Shown: positions 6,486 to 58,862 of the stretch, piece by piece
Numbering within the stretch: position 1 is the stretch's first letter
Layout of the letters: every line of letters starts with the position of its first letter
Assembly: GCF_006345805.1 (NCBI RefSeq)
Contig: NC_043011.1
Location: 64,182,464-64,246,463 of the forward strand
Source: Octopus sinensis
Lineage: Eukaryota
DNA: 64,000 bases
Reading direction: 5' to 3'
Made by a program: the position numbers and the translations under genes
Notes under the pieces: model-generated
The model's database searches: none
The model's input: the letters and a program-made list of their open reading frames with translations, nothing else
Told to the model about the DNA's origin: nothing

Positions 6486-6589
6486 CTACCGGCAAAGATA
6501 ACTTTTTTGAGGATACGCTTTGAATGTCCAGTGGGGGTAATTGCATATTTTTTCAAACTGATGAGTGCATGACTCTTTCATCTCCACAC
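6486..6589 (-). CDS. Secreted Cys-rich peptide gene, copy 1, coding exon 2: (G)VEMKESCTHQFEKICNYPHWTFKAYPQKSYLCR*
   Basis: Long polypyrimidine acceptor (ttttttcttttgtttttttataatag|GT GTG GAG), phase 1 matching exon 1. Frame is open in all three copies, with invariant Cys, NYP, W, F and AYPQ despite up to 25% nucleotide divergence. Ends TGC CGG TAG (possible weak donor CG|GTAGAT after 6490). Confidence 0.82.
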
Positions 6590-7029
6590 CTATTATAAAA
6601 AAACAAAAGAAAAAATATATAATTGAAGCTATATTTAAAACCTATGCCAGTAAATATTAGAATACATTCTTAAGTAGAATATTCATCTCATGCTCAATTA
6701 AAATAATTGAGATATCTTTGAACTTTGCCTATAAATGTCAACTTTAAATGTGTTTTACTACGACATCTGCAAATGAAGAAACAGTCACTCCCACATTTTC
6801 AAAAATAGATTTGCCTACGCCTGTATATTCTAAATAATTTTGCATGAATATTTTGATACCAAATTTTATGTTGCAAATACTTCACGGACTAAAATGGAAA
6901 TTAATTTATTATCAAACATTGTTGCACCTCAGTAATTAAAATATATTTTATCATAACTTAGAAATTAAAGAGACGTAAAAAAAAGTTTATGATATTGGAT
7001 CAAAGTTGATGAATTTATATATAATCATT

Positions 7030-7450
7030 TCTACTACGGGCACAAGGCCTGAAATTTGCCGGGATGGAAATAGTCGATTATACCGACCCCAGCGGCAGAA
7101 TCGTTAGCGCGCCGGGCGAGATGCTTAGCAATATTTCGTCTGCCGTTATGTTCTGAGTTCAAATTCCGCCGAGGTCGACTTTGTCTTTCATCCTTTCGGG
7201 GTCGATTAAATAAGTACTTGTTACGCACTCGGGTCGATATAATCGAATTAATCCGTTTGTTTGTCATTGTTTGTCCTCTCTGTATTTAGCCCCATGTGGG
7301 TAGTAAATAAATAGGTATTTGATCTATCACGCCAAAATAATGTAAAGAAATTTCGACCACGGCAGAATTGAACTCAGAAAAAGACCCGGGCTAAAAGCTG
7401 CTACACATGTTGCCCGGCGTGCCTAAGAATCTGTGAGACCGCCGCTTTCA
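7030..7450. mobile_element. tRNA-derived SINE (+, 7092-7320) nested in an older antisense SINE of the same family; paralogs 30660-31085 and 54512-54925
   Basis: A-box-like GGCAGAATCGTTAGC and B-box GAGTTCAAATTCC. The flanks 7322-7450 and 7030-7091 are the head and tail of a minus-strand copy. Confidence 0.82.
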
Positions 7451-7609
7451 TGAAGTTTTAATAATGGTAAATGAATAGTTTGGTGGAACTTTCCCATTCG
7501 ATAGGCAAGTTTGAAAAATTCCCGAGCAGTTTCCTTCTTTTCTTTCTTTCTTTTTCTTTAATGAAAACAAATTTCTTTCTCTTTCATCCAATGTTCACAT
7601 ACTTCTATT

Positions 7610-53966: not shown

Positions 53967-54070
53967 CTACCGGCAAAGAAAATTTTTTTGAGGATACGCA
54001 TTGAATGTCCAGTGGGGGTAATTGCATGCTTTTTCAAACTGTTGAGGGCATGACTCTTTCATCTCCACAC
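53967..54070 (-). CDS. Secreted Cys-rich peptide gene, copy 3, coding exon 2: (G)VEMKESCPQQFEKACNYPHWTFNAYPQKNFLCR*
   Basis: Acceptor ttttttcttttgtctttttaaattag|GT GTG GAG. Open frame with the same Cys frame. Confidence 0.82.
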
Positions 54071-57000
54071 CTAATTTAAAAAGACAAAAGAAAAAAATAT
54101 AATTAAAGCAGTATTTAAAAATTATGCCAGTAAATATTATAATACATTCTTAAGTAGAATATTCACCTCATGCTCAATTAAAATAATTGAGATATCTTTG
54201 ACCTTTGCCTATAAATGTCAATTTTAAATGTGTTTTACTACGACATCTGCAAATGAAGAAACAGTCACTCCCACATTTTCAAAAATAGATTTGCCTACGC
54301 CTGTATATTCTAAATAATTTTGCATGAATATTTTGATACCAAATTTTATGTTGCAAGAATTCATGGAATAAAATGGAAATTATATTATTATCAAACATTG
54401 TTGGGTCTCTGTAAGTAAAATATATTTTATCATAACTTAGAAATTAAAGAGACGTGAAACAAAAAGGTTTTGACGTTGGATCACAGTTGATGAACTTATA
54501 AATAATCTTTTCTACCACAGGCAAAACGCCTGAAATTTGCCATGATGGAAATAGTCGATTATACCGACCCCAGTGGCAGAATCGTTAGCACGACGGGCGA
54601 AATGCTTAGCAGTATTTCGTCTGTCGCTATGTTCTGAGTTCAAATTCCGCCGAGGTCGACTTTGTCTTTCATCCTTTCGGGGTCGATTAAATAAGTACTT
54701 GTTACGCACTCGGGTCGATATAATCGAATTAATCCGTTTACTTGTCATTGTTTGTCCTCTCTGTATTTAGCCCCATCTGGGTAGAAAAGAAATAGGTATT
54801 TAATCTATCATGCCAAACGAATGAAAAGAAATTTCGACCGCGGCAGAATTTGAACTCAGAAAAAGACCTGGGCTAAATGTTGCTGCACATTTTGCCCGGC
54901 GTGCTGTGAGCACGCCGCCTTCATGCAGCTTTAAATAATGGCAAAGGAATTGTTTGGTGGAACTTTCCCATTCGATAGACAAGTTGAAAGATTCCCGAGC
55001 AGCTTCCTTGTTTTCCTTCTTTCTTTTTATTGAATGCAAACAAATTTCTTTTTCTTTCATCCAATGTTCACATCCCTCTATTTACAGGTCCATTACATTA
55101 AGTCCCGCTGCGTGAAACATTTTTTCTCAAAGAAAAATATCGTGATGCATGCCCCTAAATCTCAATTATTTCTTTGTAACTCATGAGGGAAATTGTGTTT
55201 TATTTTGTAAGACTATATATTTTAGAAATCAGAAATGAAAACACAGAATTGACGGATAGTTATTGTTATTGCTAAGCAGAGTGAATAATTTTCTATTTAT
55301 TAAATCTTTCCTTTCTTTTTCGTAATATTTGTGTCGTATTATACAGTATAACTATAGCATATAACCATTGATATAAACAGCAAACGTTAAATTCTGCGTT
55401 AAATGTGAGAGGTTTTGTACAGAGAACTTAAACATGGTCTGATAAGCGTGTGGAGACGAGGCAATGGGTCGTATGCAATGTTTCGTGTGGCGGGGACGTT
55501 CGAAAATGCATAGCAACGCCACAGTGAAATCAAGAGCATGTCCATCACTTTTTCCCTTTAACTGCTCTATTGTGCACCGGGAATACGTCCACCAGAACCG
55601 AACCATCGATCGAGAGTTCTGCAGCGATGTTTTCGAGTGTTTGATGTAGAACATTCGGTGAAAAAGATCGGATCTGTTGTTTCCCAATAATTGGAATCCT
55701 CACTTTGACAATGCACCCTATAACCGAGCATTCCTTACAAATGCGTTGCCCGCCTATAACAACATGGCATCATTTCCACACTCCAATTCTTATCAGATTT
55801 AACATCTGCGATTTCCATCGCATCTCAAAGATAAAAAAATGTAGTTCAATAGATGCCATATTCAGGCCGTTGTCCAGGACGAATCGCATAAGACCGTCGA
55901 CTAGTTTCCGGATAACGACTTCCAGACCGGATCCCAAATGTAGAAGAAACGCTTGGATCGATGTATGGTCAAAAGTATTAACTTCTATTAAAGATATCTT
56001 GTTCAGGAACTGTTTGTGGTTTCAAGGTATTGAATCTCTTTAATTTTATTAAAAATCAAGCAGCACCAGGGAAGTTCGTAACACTGATAAATAAATAAAT
56101 TTAATTATATAAAAGTACACAAAATACACACTCTAAAGGGTGTCAATAGGAAAAAAACAGGTAGAGATACGAAAAAACAGAAGTTATAATTTTAAACATC
56201 TGTCCTTTCCAAACAGCATTATAAGTGCGAAAACATCTCAAAATACTAGTGAATGTCAGTCGTCAAAAATGTCTACTCAGGACACTGTCATATCCGTCCT
56301 CCATTAGAGTCATAATCAAAGCAGATTGTGCAACCTGATGACGTATCCATTTGGAGGTTTTCTTCACCATTTTGAAATATCTACTTGAAATGTACACACA
56401 CATATATAATATATATATATATATGTGTGTGTGTCTCTGTGTGTGTGTGTATATACAGGATGGCATACACATACGCTTCATCATACTAAAATATTCACAG
56501 GTGCATACACACAAGGATCTTCGGTTATGTCTTCTAATACTCAGAAGGATCAAACGGAAACGAAATATGGAGAATTAAATGAAATATATGGATAACGTAC
56601 GCACTCACAGTGATACACATACATTCTAATCTATTCATACATACATACGTATATACACCCCCTACACACACACACACACAAATTTGGTTGAAATACATAG
56701 AAACACAGAAGAAGAAGACAGGTGTGTGAACAGCAAGTATTAGCTGGACTCTCGAAAACAAAGTCAGAAATTCTTTTACATTTCGACCCTACGCTCTTCA
56801 ACAGAAAGGAATAAAAGGCAATAAACAGAGTAAGGGGAAAAACGAAAAAAAAAAAATCATATAGATTCATCAGTCCAACTTGGCGAATCATTCGCCATGC
56901 CGGACTAAGGAACACTACAAGTTTTGTTTCACTTTCTCTCTGATTATTTTCTCATATTTCTTCGTGTTGAAAAGATTTATCTCGAAAGGTACAATATTTT

Positions 57001-58825
57001 GATTTCTTTCCTCAAACTAATACACTTGCTTGTTGTTCGTACATCTGTCTCTGTATTTTGTCTCTCTATAAATTCCAACTATATAACATACGCTCACTTG
57101 GTTACGCCAGTTTGATCCTGACTGAATAAACTACGTATTGGATGGGCTTATGTTAAACCCTTCCCGAACCTTCAGCACCTGTCCCCATCCTCATACCAGC
57201 ACTCCGCCTCGATTACCATTGTATCTACTGCATCGACCTTTAAGGATATTACTGGAGGTTTCAATGATCTTAAATAGCATTTTTATAAATAGAAGAAAGT
57301 TTGAATGTCGTACAATGCATTATCTATGAATAAGATGAAACAAAATATGATTAAAGGTTTAGGCAATTATTAAAAGATACGAATATGGTAATAGAATGAC
57401 TTGATATAGTCTAAAACATTATCTGTTACTGATGTAAATATTTTTTAATGTTACCCAGATTAGGGAATTATCTAAAATGCACGAGCGAATGGTATTAAGA
57501 CACTGACATATATGGTATACTAATAAATTTAGAAATAGAAAAATCACTGAATATTGTCTAATATGCTATCTGTTACGGAAATGGACGAAAATATGCCAAA
57601 CCCAGTTAGTTCATTATTCAGTTGCTTTGAGCTACTTAATAAAGTGTCTTATTGTAAATATAATGATCAAGTATATTTTCAATACGAATATACATAGAGT
57701 AATATTAGAATATAGGAATGCATCCTGTTTAAGAAGTTGGCAGCATGCAAGCGATTCATGAGACTGATTAATAATATTCGAATTCCCATTATTAATATGG
57801 AACACCATACAAATAGGGAACCAAAGCCAACTCTCGCATCACCCATCATATAGCAACGCATAACTTATAATAAACAACACAATTTTAAATTCAATACAAT
57901 TTTTCGGTGAGTGAAAATAAAAGTTTAGCGAGAACGCTATAATTATTGGAATGAGGTGCGTTGATAGGTCGATGGTTTGTAGTATAGATAGCGCAATGCG
58001 TTTACTTAGAACTTAGAAAACTAAATGAACCAGTATTAGATGCATCATACGTTGCTGGAGTATACTAATGTGTATGTCCGTGCGTGTTTATATAGGCAGA
58101 CTTGTTCAGACTACCTCGTGATGTTTAGAGTCGTTAAAATGTTGCAAGTACTTAATTCTTTTTCACAACGTGGCACTCATTTAATGGATTTACTGGGCCA
58201 CGTTTCGCCGGAACGCTAATTTATGCGGACATAAAACAAGCTAAGCTCTTGAAGCGGCTGCGGATGATAACGTGGGAACAGATTCTTCCATACTATCGTG
58301 CGCACACACGCATTCACACACATATCCATACATAATTACACATATATATATAAACATATATATATATACTTATAAAAAAAAATATATATCCATATATGAT
58401 ACGTATATATAAATATATATATATATATATATATATATATATATATATATATACTTATAAAAAATATATATATCCATATATAAATATATATATATATATA
58501 TATATATATACATATATATATATGTAAGTATATATATATATGCATATACATATGTATATATATATATACCTAAAAATATGTATATATATATATATATAAT
58601 ATATATATATATATATATATATATATATATATATATATATATACATATACATAATTGATGTATGATTACACTCTTTCAAATACATACGTATATATATTTC
58701 AATAAATGTTTGTTTGAGTTGTTTATATGAGGACAATGTTGGGAAGGATACAGAGAAGAGGAAAAAAGTGAAACGTTGTTAGATGTTTGATTTCTTGTGA
58801 AAGACATTGTAATTCATATTCTTAC

Positions 58826-58862
58826 CACAAATGAGAAACGCCAGGAAGATGTAGATTTTCAT
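58826..58862 (-). CDS. Secreted Cys-rich peptide gene, copy 3, coding exon 1 (MKIYIFLAFLIC+G)
   Basis: Coding part identical to copy 1 with GTAAGA donor, although the adjacent 5' UTR is diverged. Confidence 0.82.

Follow-up and report, generated by a model that had tools for sequence, protein, structure and literature searches.

We identified three tandem copies of a small gene on the minus strand of a 64,000-nucleotide (nt) stretch of the Octopus sinensis genome (RefSeq assembly GCF_006345805.1, contig NC_043011.1, forward-strand positions 64,182,464 to 64,246,463), the whole of which is referred to here as the window. The three copies are probably members of an octopus-restricted family, co-orthologous to LOC128249864 of Octopus bimaculoides, and as such would be five-exon genes with a TATA promoter, encoding secretory or surface proteins of 103-104 amino acids (aa) with six cysteines and a helical fold. 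The window itself is a tandem segmental duplication whose units are 87-92% identical and are interrupted by (AT)n and trinucleotide repeats and by insertions of transposable elements (TEs). It is approximately 99% identical to chromosome OX597831.1 of Octopus vulgaris, in agreement with the cephalopod origin put forward in the original prediction for this DNA, which was made from the letters alone and described tandem two-exon genes for short secreted peptides. The tandem genes are real, exon 1 is a separate exon for a putative signal peptide and the cysteine frame is conserved, as had been proposed.

The exons measure 37, 100, 88, 30 and 60 nt in each copy, apart from exon 5 of copy 2 with 57 nt, and give intact open reading frames (ORFs) of 104, 103 and 104 aa in copies 1, 2 and 3, respectively. 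The coding part of exon 1 (ATG...TGTG^GTAAGA, where the caret marks a splice junction here and below) ends in phase 1 and lies exactly where it had been predicted, at 14559-14523, 34029-33993 and 58862-58826 on the minus strand. Copy 1 shares this exon with the RefSeq model of O. bimaculoides. Its sequence across the copies is ATGAAAATCTACATCTTCCTGGCGT[T/A]TCTCATTTGTG^GTAAGAAT, and the putative signal peptide is MKIYIFLAFLICG. Exon 2 occupies 6490-6589 in copy 1 (VEMKESCTHQFEKICNYPHWTFKAYPQKSYLC(R)), 30122-30221 in copy 2 (the hypervariable VEMKHSCFDEYKEACNYPKWMFQAYPQEGFVC(R)) and 53971-54070 in copy 3 (VEMKESCPQQFEKACNYPHWTFNAYPQKNFLC(R)). The predicted acceptors, a T-rich polypyrimidine tract followed by AG, are present at 6589, 30221 and 54070. 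The phase 1 join to exon 1 was also borne out, and the junction is the same in the O. bimaculoides RefSeq model XP_052830366.1 (LOC128249864). Intron 1 measures 7933, 3771 and 4755 nt in copies 1, 2 and 3, within the size range first given for it. Exons 1 and 2 each occur exactly three times in the window, and a relaxed tblastn search found no fourth copy, fragment or pseudo-exon there.

The end of the gene had been misplaced. Reading the TAG after CGG as a stop codon reproduces the three predicted 46-aa products exactly, but this TAG (6488-6486 in copy 1) is intronic. It is part of TGCCG^GTAGAT, the donor site of an internal exon of 100 nt, and exons 3-5 follow. The protein continues past '...LCR' in XP_052830366.1, and thus the gene does not stop after exon 2. 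The product is therefore not a 46-aa peptide with three cysteines; it is encoded by five exons, carries six cysteines after the signal peptide and ends in a hydrophobic C-terminal tail. Using the O. bimaculoides protein A0A0L8HFY8 as a tblastn query, exon 3 (ILK.DSKCFY...KAC) was found at 4087-4000 (ILRKDSKCFYKTSRECAKFYDQYIHKACR), 28561-28474 (ILKRDSKCFYQTSHECAKFYDKYIHKACH) and 43716-43629 (ILKNDSKCFYNTSHDCAKFYDEYIRKACH). The tail exon was found in the same way at 2295-2236 (coding part DMMELLFSIAVTRYLMRYI and the stop codon), at 26402-26346 (57 nt, with an in-frame 3-nt deletion) and at 41272-41213; splice sites fixed the borders of both exons, and an AATAAA overlaps the stop codon of exon 5. 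For exon 4, intron 3 was scanned for AG-(3n)-GT pieces, which were scored against SQNGGTAQKK of O. bimaculoides. A 30-nt microexon at the homologous position was the top-ranked candidate in 3/3 copies (3436-3465; 27296-27325, encoding HSGVGTVQRK; and 42416-42445). All splice-site dinucleotides of the four introns in three copies are canonical (24/24) and the phases are compatible. Exon 5 of copy 2 (26346-26402) is one codon shorter than its counterpart in the O. vulgaris reference (locus positions 14936-14995), reading ...LLF-FAV... against ...LLFSIAV....

Exon sizes derived from the genomic locus of O. bimaculoides are identical to those of the window genes (37/100/88/30/60). The exon 2 donor of that species is CCG^GTATAT, and the in-frame TAG is not conserved there. 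In the window, the first 30 nt of intron 2 (GTAGATATATTCGCACGACTACATTTAATA; 6460-6489, 30092-30121 and 53941-53970) are 100% identical in the three copies, and the same intron start is found in both O. vulgaris reference copies, directly beside the most variable exon of the gene. This segment may help to regulate splicing or may mark a boundary of gene conversion.

The core promoter and short 5' untranslated region of copy 1 lie at 14560-14700 on the minus strand, and the ATG is preceded at a distance of 54-60 nt by a TATATAG (14619-14613). Hardly any differences are found between positions -140 and -1 when the three copies, the O. vulgaris reference and O. bimaculoides are compared, whereas intron flanks are 72-76% identical between species. 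Upstream of the TATA box, all copies and O. bimaculoides have the block CCAGTTATGAACAAAACATGTGTTACCTTCGTTTTTCATTTATA without any difference (14560-14700, 34030-34170 and 58863-59003; O. bimaculoides locus 9860-10000). It is far more conserved than any other non-coding sequence here and is a candidate cis-regulatory element of the family.

The cysteines follow the frame C-x7-C-x16-C-x8-C-x7-C-x11-C within a domain of ~62 residues in 6/6 proteins compared. At the N-terminus, the hydrophobic region has a mean Kyte-Doolittle value of 2.1-3.2, and the small residues C-G end at the exon boundary. After the last cysteine come a small-residue cluster (HSGVG, SQNGG or HGGA), a polar spacer and a hydrophobic C-terminus of 11-15 residues. 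A signal peptide, a domain, small residues, a polar spacer and a C-terminal hydrophobic stretch form the standard layout of precursors of glycosylphosphatidylinositol (GPI)-anchored proteins, and a candidate GPI-signal layout is present in all members, although the stretch is short and contains charged residues. Modelling of the mature domain from six family members with AlphaFold2 predicted a five-helix bundle at a mean pLDDT (predicted local distance difference test score) of 78.8 (76-89 over residues 1-60). A first run on full-length protein with four near-identical sequences reached a pLDDT of 48 and was discarded; it drew the tail as one helix at low confidence. Foldseek searches with the better model gave no match in the PDB or BFVD (the best PDB hit was unrelated, E 9.5), a sequence profile search of the PDB returned one irrelevant match (E 0.35), and no Pfam family scored above threshold, with RGM_N as the only sub-threshold match.

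To look for relatives, a profile of the three exon-2 peptides was searched against 1.84 billion representative proteins. Only two proteins matched, A0A0L8HFY8 of O. bimaculoides and CAI9735836.1 of O. vulgaris. The cluster of A0A0L8HFY8 also contains XP_052830366.1 (LOC128249864, 104 aa), which reads by exon MKIYIFIAFLICG^VEMKDSC...EYLCR^ILKNDSKCFYDTTHDCAKFYDNYLLKACA^SQNGGTAQKK^GMTELLLSIAASSYLMRYL, and the family profile matches A0A0L8HFY8 at E 1.6e-46. This orthologue is 71%, 63% and 72% identical to copies 1, 2 and 3, respectively, over the whole-protein alignment, and it shares their exon sizes, splice phases, cysteine frame, signal peptide, tail and promoter. The differences from it are concentrated in exon 2 and the microexon. 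It is present as a single copy in O. bimaculoides (53 kb read), whereas there are three copies in the window and at least four in O. vulgaris. Two paralogues, LOC128249865 (105 aa) and LOC128249866 (92/108 aa), flank LOC128249864 in the same chromosomal cluster. Both have the 37-nt phase 1 signal exon, the exon layout, the hydrophobic C-terminal tail and the cysteine spacing 7/16/8/7/11, but they are only 27-29% identical. Isoform X2 of LOC128249866 is spliced without the microexon in which the candidate attachment residues lie. No orthologues of LOC128249865 or LOC128249866 were found in the window by tblastn. In addition, another locus in the O. bimaculoides cluster (~22940-23060 and 24051-24140, plus strand), where no gene has been called, holds an unannotated fourth member, with the exon-2-like GVPWYGDCLNQHNSRCNENIIENTWYNFC (C-x7-C-x12-C) and the exon-3-like IYTTSKKCFNNLSKYCLGFYDFYHKHKCL followed by a GTAAGA donor.

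The family had been thought possibly undescribed, but LOC128249864, LOC128249865 and LOC128249866 together with UniProt A0A0L8HFY8 are already predicted in O. bimaculoides as 'uncharacterized proteins'. It is new as a set of members and of a familiar kind, a taxon-restricted array of cysteine-rich extracellular proteins. Outside Octopus, two search engines covering up to 5.8 billion proteins found no relatives, and a word-indexed homologue search with the 46-aa product returned nothing. Full-text literature searches for the peptide, motifs and accessions found no report, and a broader search for cysteine-rich octopus proteins gave analogies only, such as the Mytilus MgCRP-I family.

In O. vulgaris, the region 16.48-16.53 Mb of OX597831.1 and the window share ~99% identity near exon 2 of copies 1 and 2; the window therefore belongs to the O. 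vulgaris species complex but to a different assembly. All five exons of both copies are present and intact in this reference, with a few single-base differences. Downstream of its copy 1 (locus positions 44313-44357, plus strand), beyond the start of the window, the reference has one more perfect exon 1 together with the donor, and thus the array comprises at least four genes. The expectation that gene finders mishandle the locus proved correct. The O. vulgaris 'hypothetical predicted protein' CAI9735836.1 (161 aa, over locus positions 10001-35531) is assembled from minus-strand pieces corresponding to 31293-31228 (copy 2 intron 1), 28561-28474 (copy 2 exon 3), 21494-21240 (a TE-like segment) and 6593-6516 (copy 1 exon 2), and it omits copy 2's own exon 2. 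The TE-like segment resembles another at 47733-47461. CAI9735836.1 is an ab initio chimera, and the genes are effectively unannotated in O. vulgaris.

Conservation between species was compared with that of the surrounding DNA. Over 315 coding nt, O. bimaculoides differs from copies 1 and 3 by no indels and from copy 2 by the one in-frame 3-nt deletion, against 19-22 gap openings per ~1450 nt in the 150-nt flanks. At the flank rate, ~4 indels would be expected in 315 coding nt, with a probability of none of ~0.01-0.02. When 54 substitutions were placed at random in a simulation, the start codon, the absence of stops and all six cysteines were kept with P = 0.0008. The six cysteines and their spacing are also invariant in the paralogues at 27-29% identity. 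Frameshifts and stops in orthologous exons, which the original prediction had named as evidence that would speak against it, were looked for in O. bimaculoides; the frames are intact and contain no stops. As far as comparison of sequences can tell, these findings make it unlikely that the copies are pseudogenes or derive from a TE.

The five exons have not evolved alike. Between copies, exons 1, 4 and 5 are at least as conserved as their flanks, with exon 1 97-100% identical, and exon 3 is about as conserved as its flanks. In contrast, exon 2 of copy 2 is only 75-76% identical to those of copies 1 and 3, whereas the adjacent intron is 92-94% identical (Fisher p = 1e-6). Over codons 17-46, copies 1 and 3 differ by seven nonsynonymous changes and by 0-1 synonymous changes, depending on whether codon 46 is taken as unspliced CGG (0) or as spliced CGC versus CGT (1). 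Comparison of copy 2 with O. bimaculoides over the mature part of exon 2 gave 19.5 nonsynonymous and 0.5 synonymous differences, and both exon 2 differences (2/2) between the window and the O. vulgaris reference are nonsynonymous. Surprisingly many synonymous differences separate copies 1 and 3 from O. bimaculoides. These exon 2 counts are small, and gene conversion of the flanks or exchange of exons within the array may contribute to them. We infer from this fast coding segment, which keeps its frame and its cysteines, the pattern expected of recognition or effector proteins under diversifying selection. Genes for toxins, antimicrobial peptides and pheromones likewise combine a conserved signal region with a mature region that is hypervariable within a cysteine frame; this is a resemblance in behaviour, not membership.

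The introns have been enlarged by insertions, and one of them contains an assembly gap. Intron 2 is 2402 nt long in copy 1, 1560 nt in copy 2 and 10,254 nt as assembled in copy 3 (43717-53970, minus strand). The last is longer by ~8 kb because an inverted repeat has been inserted (~44708-52762), with arms of 3-4 kb (44839-47886 versus 52696-48643) that are 85-87% identical. At the centre of the inverted repeat is a run of N (48333-48432), which separates exons 1 and 2 of copy 3 from exons 3-5. The gap lies outside every exon and no reading frame crosses it, yet the copy 3 gene model spans it. Its 424-bp flanks (47909-48332 and 48433-48856) are direct duplicates that differ by small indels and are 93% identical, as would be expected of unmerged contig ends. 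Outside the insert, both sides are colinear with intron 2 of copy 1 (4264-5219 matches 43753-44708, and 5293-10970 matches 52762-58503), and thus the join at the gap is credible. The true length and content of this intron are uncertain, and the insert may partly be an assembly artefact. Low-complexity TA/CA-rich DNA and a C-terminal fragment of the reverse transcriptase of a long interspersed nuclear element (LINE; ORF 50539-50973, minus strand) are found within the insert.

The original prediction had described the surrounding TE frames as full of stops. This is partly true, but a LINE in intron 1 of copy 1 (10866-13981; insertion ~10970-14074, plus strand) has an intact 780-aa ORF with Exo_endo_phos and RVT_1 domains, followed by an ORF of 277 aa, and it is flanked by a duplicated AT-rich target. 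The corresponding intron of the O. vulgaris reference lacks the element and measures 4.5 kb versus 7.9 kb here; the insertion is therefore recent or polymorphic, and the element is possibly still active.

Several observations weigh against the five-exon reading and the protein derived from it. The exon 2 donor GTAGAT is not a strong consensus, and some intron retention, giving the 46-aa product, is conceivable. Transcription and splicing as modelled are predicted from the O. bimaculoides RefSeq/Gnomon models (including isoform X2 of LOC128249866) and from constraint. The signal peptide is short at 13 residues, and the C-terminal tail is short for a GPI signal and has E and R residues. The structure model derives from six sequences only, and the disulfide pairing is presumed. 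Whole-gene ratios of nonsynonymous to synonymous change (dN/dS) are high (0.5-2), which taken alone also fits relaxed constraint.

Four other explanations were considered. The transcript could end after exon 2 and yield a 46-aa precursor with a mature three-cysteine peptide of ~30-33 aa of the venom, antimicrobial or pheromone type. This is very unlikely, even though the TAG directly after CGG closes the ORF in 3/3 copies, the 30 nt that follow are 100% identical among copies, and an intron-retaining isoform, given the weak GTAGAT donor, would encode exactly the 46-aa product. In the RefSeq model of the orthologue, exon 2 is spliced here to three more exons, and all of the window copies and both O. 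vulgaris reference copies have exons 3-5 intact and in phase. O. bimaculoides has GTATAT and no TAG, and read-through there would add YIYSHDYF. A three-cysteine peptide would have one cysteine without a partner, whereas the full-length protein has six, and their spacing does not vary among paralogues. The AATAAA is at the stop codon of exon 5. We consider it similarly improbable that the copies are decaying duplicates, that is, pseudogenes or neutral ORFs derived from a single O. bimaculoides-type gene, with frames still intact as a result of recent segmental duplication. The intactness spans the species split (P 0.0008 for start, no stop and six cysteines; P ~0.016 for no indel at flank rates), the splice dinucleotides are all canonical, the single indel preserves the frame, conservation is higher in the promoter than in the introns, and exon 2 is more diverged than neutral flanks rather than equally so. 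Decay would nevertheless fit a whole-gene dN/dS between copies near 1 (0.7-1.0), the 87-92% identity of the segmental duplicates and the invasion of introns by LINEs.

It is scarcely credible that the exons are parts of a TE or of a larger neighbouring gene rather than independent small genes. The region is TE-rich, and the only matching O. vulgaris protein joins copy 2 exon 3 and copy 1 exon 2 with other pieces, but this protein, CAI9735836.1, is a chimera of two copies, an intron and a TE-like segment. Each exon occurs only once per unit, the O. bimaculoides family consists of single genes in a small cluster, and nothing similar was found among 5.8 billion proteins outside Octopus. The original prediction, which did not take the motif for a TE, was right on this point. 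A different question is whether the tail of the five-exon product is a GPI signal at all. The protein could be small, helical and freely secreted, the tail forming an amphipathic helix or serving as a propeptide, or it could have a short C-terminal membrane anchor, and we regard this alternative as somewhat unlikely. The hydrophobic residues of the tail number only 11-15, E and R/K occur in it, isoform X2 of LOC128249866 lacks the microexon with the candidate attachment residues, and the first full-length AlphaFold2 model drew the tail as one low-confidence helix. Against this, the order of parts of a GPI precursor is kept in all paralogues at <30% identity. To judge from the sequence, a GPI-attachment signal rather than free secretion has roughly even odds.

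In the five-exon gene that we favour, exon 1 would supply a short cleavable signal peptide, as the layout suggests, and the protein would enter the secretory pathway. Exons 2 and 3 would together form one compact domain of ~62 residues, predicted to be a small helical bundle whose six cysteines presumably make three disulfides. The microexon may provide a small-residue linker (HSGVG/SQNGG) and exon 5 a hydrophobic tail, which together would amount to a GPI-signal-like layout. The mature protein would then most likely be anchored at the cell surface or shed from it. The half of the domain encoded by exon 2 may be a recognition or binding surface under diversifying selection, and the array would be a source of variant extracellular proteins for binding or recognition. 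We tentatively suggest, as a possibility rather than an expectation, that this octopod-restricted six-cysteine helical family, with GPI-type display or shedding and an exon-2 face diversified by selection across a growing array, is a lineage-specific extracellular recognition system. If so, it could serve, for example, sucker chemosensation, gamete or mate recognition, or immunity, and would have been overlooked because its exons are only 30-100 nt long.

These results correct the annotation of three intact small genes of the common octopus that are now either unmodelled or fused into a chimeric 'hypothetical protein'. The exon signature 37/100/88/30/60 together with the cysteine frame allows the family to be found in other cephalopods. 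Taxon-restricted, fast-evolving arrays of secreted or surface proteins are the usual raw material of lineage-specific chemoreception, reproduction and defence, and few such families in octopus have any functional handle. The value of the finding is moderate, with relatives already predicted in a sister species; tissue-specific expression (suckers, reproductive tract or eggs) or a new fold would raise it. De Lisa and colleagues reportedly found in 2013 that O. vulgaris eggs release a sperm-attracting peptide.

Among known protein families, the only one matched in Pfam was RGM_N (PF06535), with copy 1 at E 0.009 and 16.7 bits. The three window copies and XP_052830366.1 all match at or above E 0.009, and one paralogue matches at E 0.035 (14.8 bits) in a similar register. 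RGMs are GPI-anchored repulsive guidance molecules with a disulfide-rich, helical N-terminal domain, and the octopus family is likewise cysteine-rich and predicted to be helical. However, the scores of 14.8-16.7 bits are below the gathering score of 24.2, the second paralogue has no match, and the octopus proteins are without a von Willebrand-type domain. No RGM chains were found in the PDB profile search at E <= 10 or by Foldseek. Membership of RGM_N was therefore rejected, given the sub-threshold scores and the lack of an RGM structure match, and the similarity is a lead only.

In precursor layout, the octopus proteins resemble the Ly6/uPAR/CD59 type of small GPI-anchored, cysteine-rich surface proteins. 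The likeness extends to a putative signal peptide, one small disulfide-rich domain, a small-residue site, a hydrophobic tail, a length of ~100 aa and clustered multigene families. However, Ly6/uPAR/CD59-type proteins have beta-rich three-finger folds with 8-10 cysteines, whereas the octopus domain is predicted to be all-helical with six cysteines, and there is no sequence or fold match. In their mode of evolution, the octopus genes recall cone-snail toxin superfamilies, in which multi-copy genes combine a conserved signal and invariant cysteines with a fast-evolving region between them. The Mytilus MgCRP-I family (PMC4558851) is a second case, a hypervariable secreted cysteine-rich family encoded by multi-copy genes with a conserved signal region, invariant cysteines and a fast-evolving region. 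The likeness to both is a functional analogy only and implies no sequence relationship. The octopus product is a protein of ~90 residues with a helical domain and a hydrophobic tail rather than a short knotted peptide, and only half of its domain, the part encoded by exon 2, is hypervariable.

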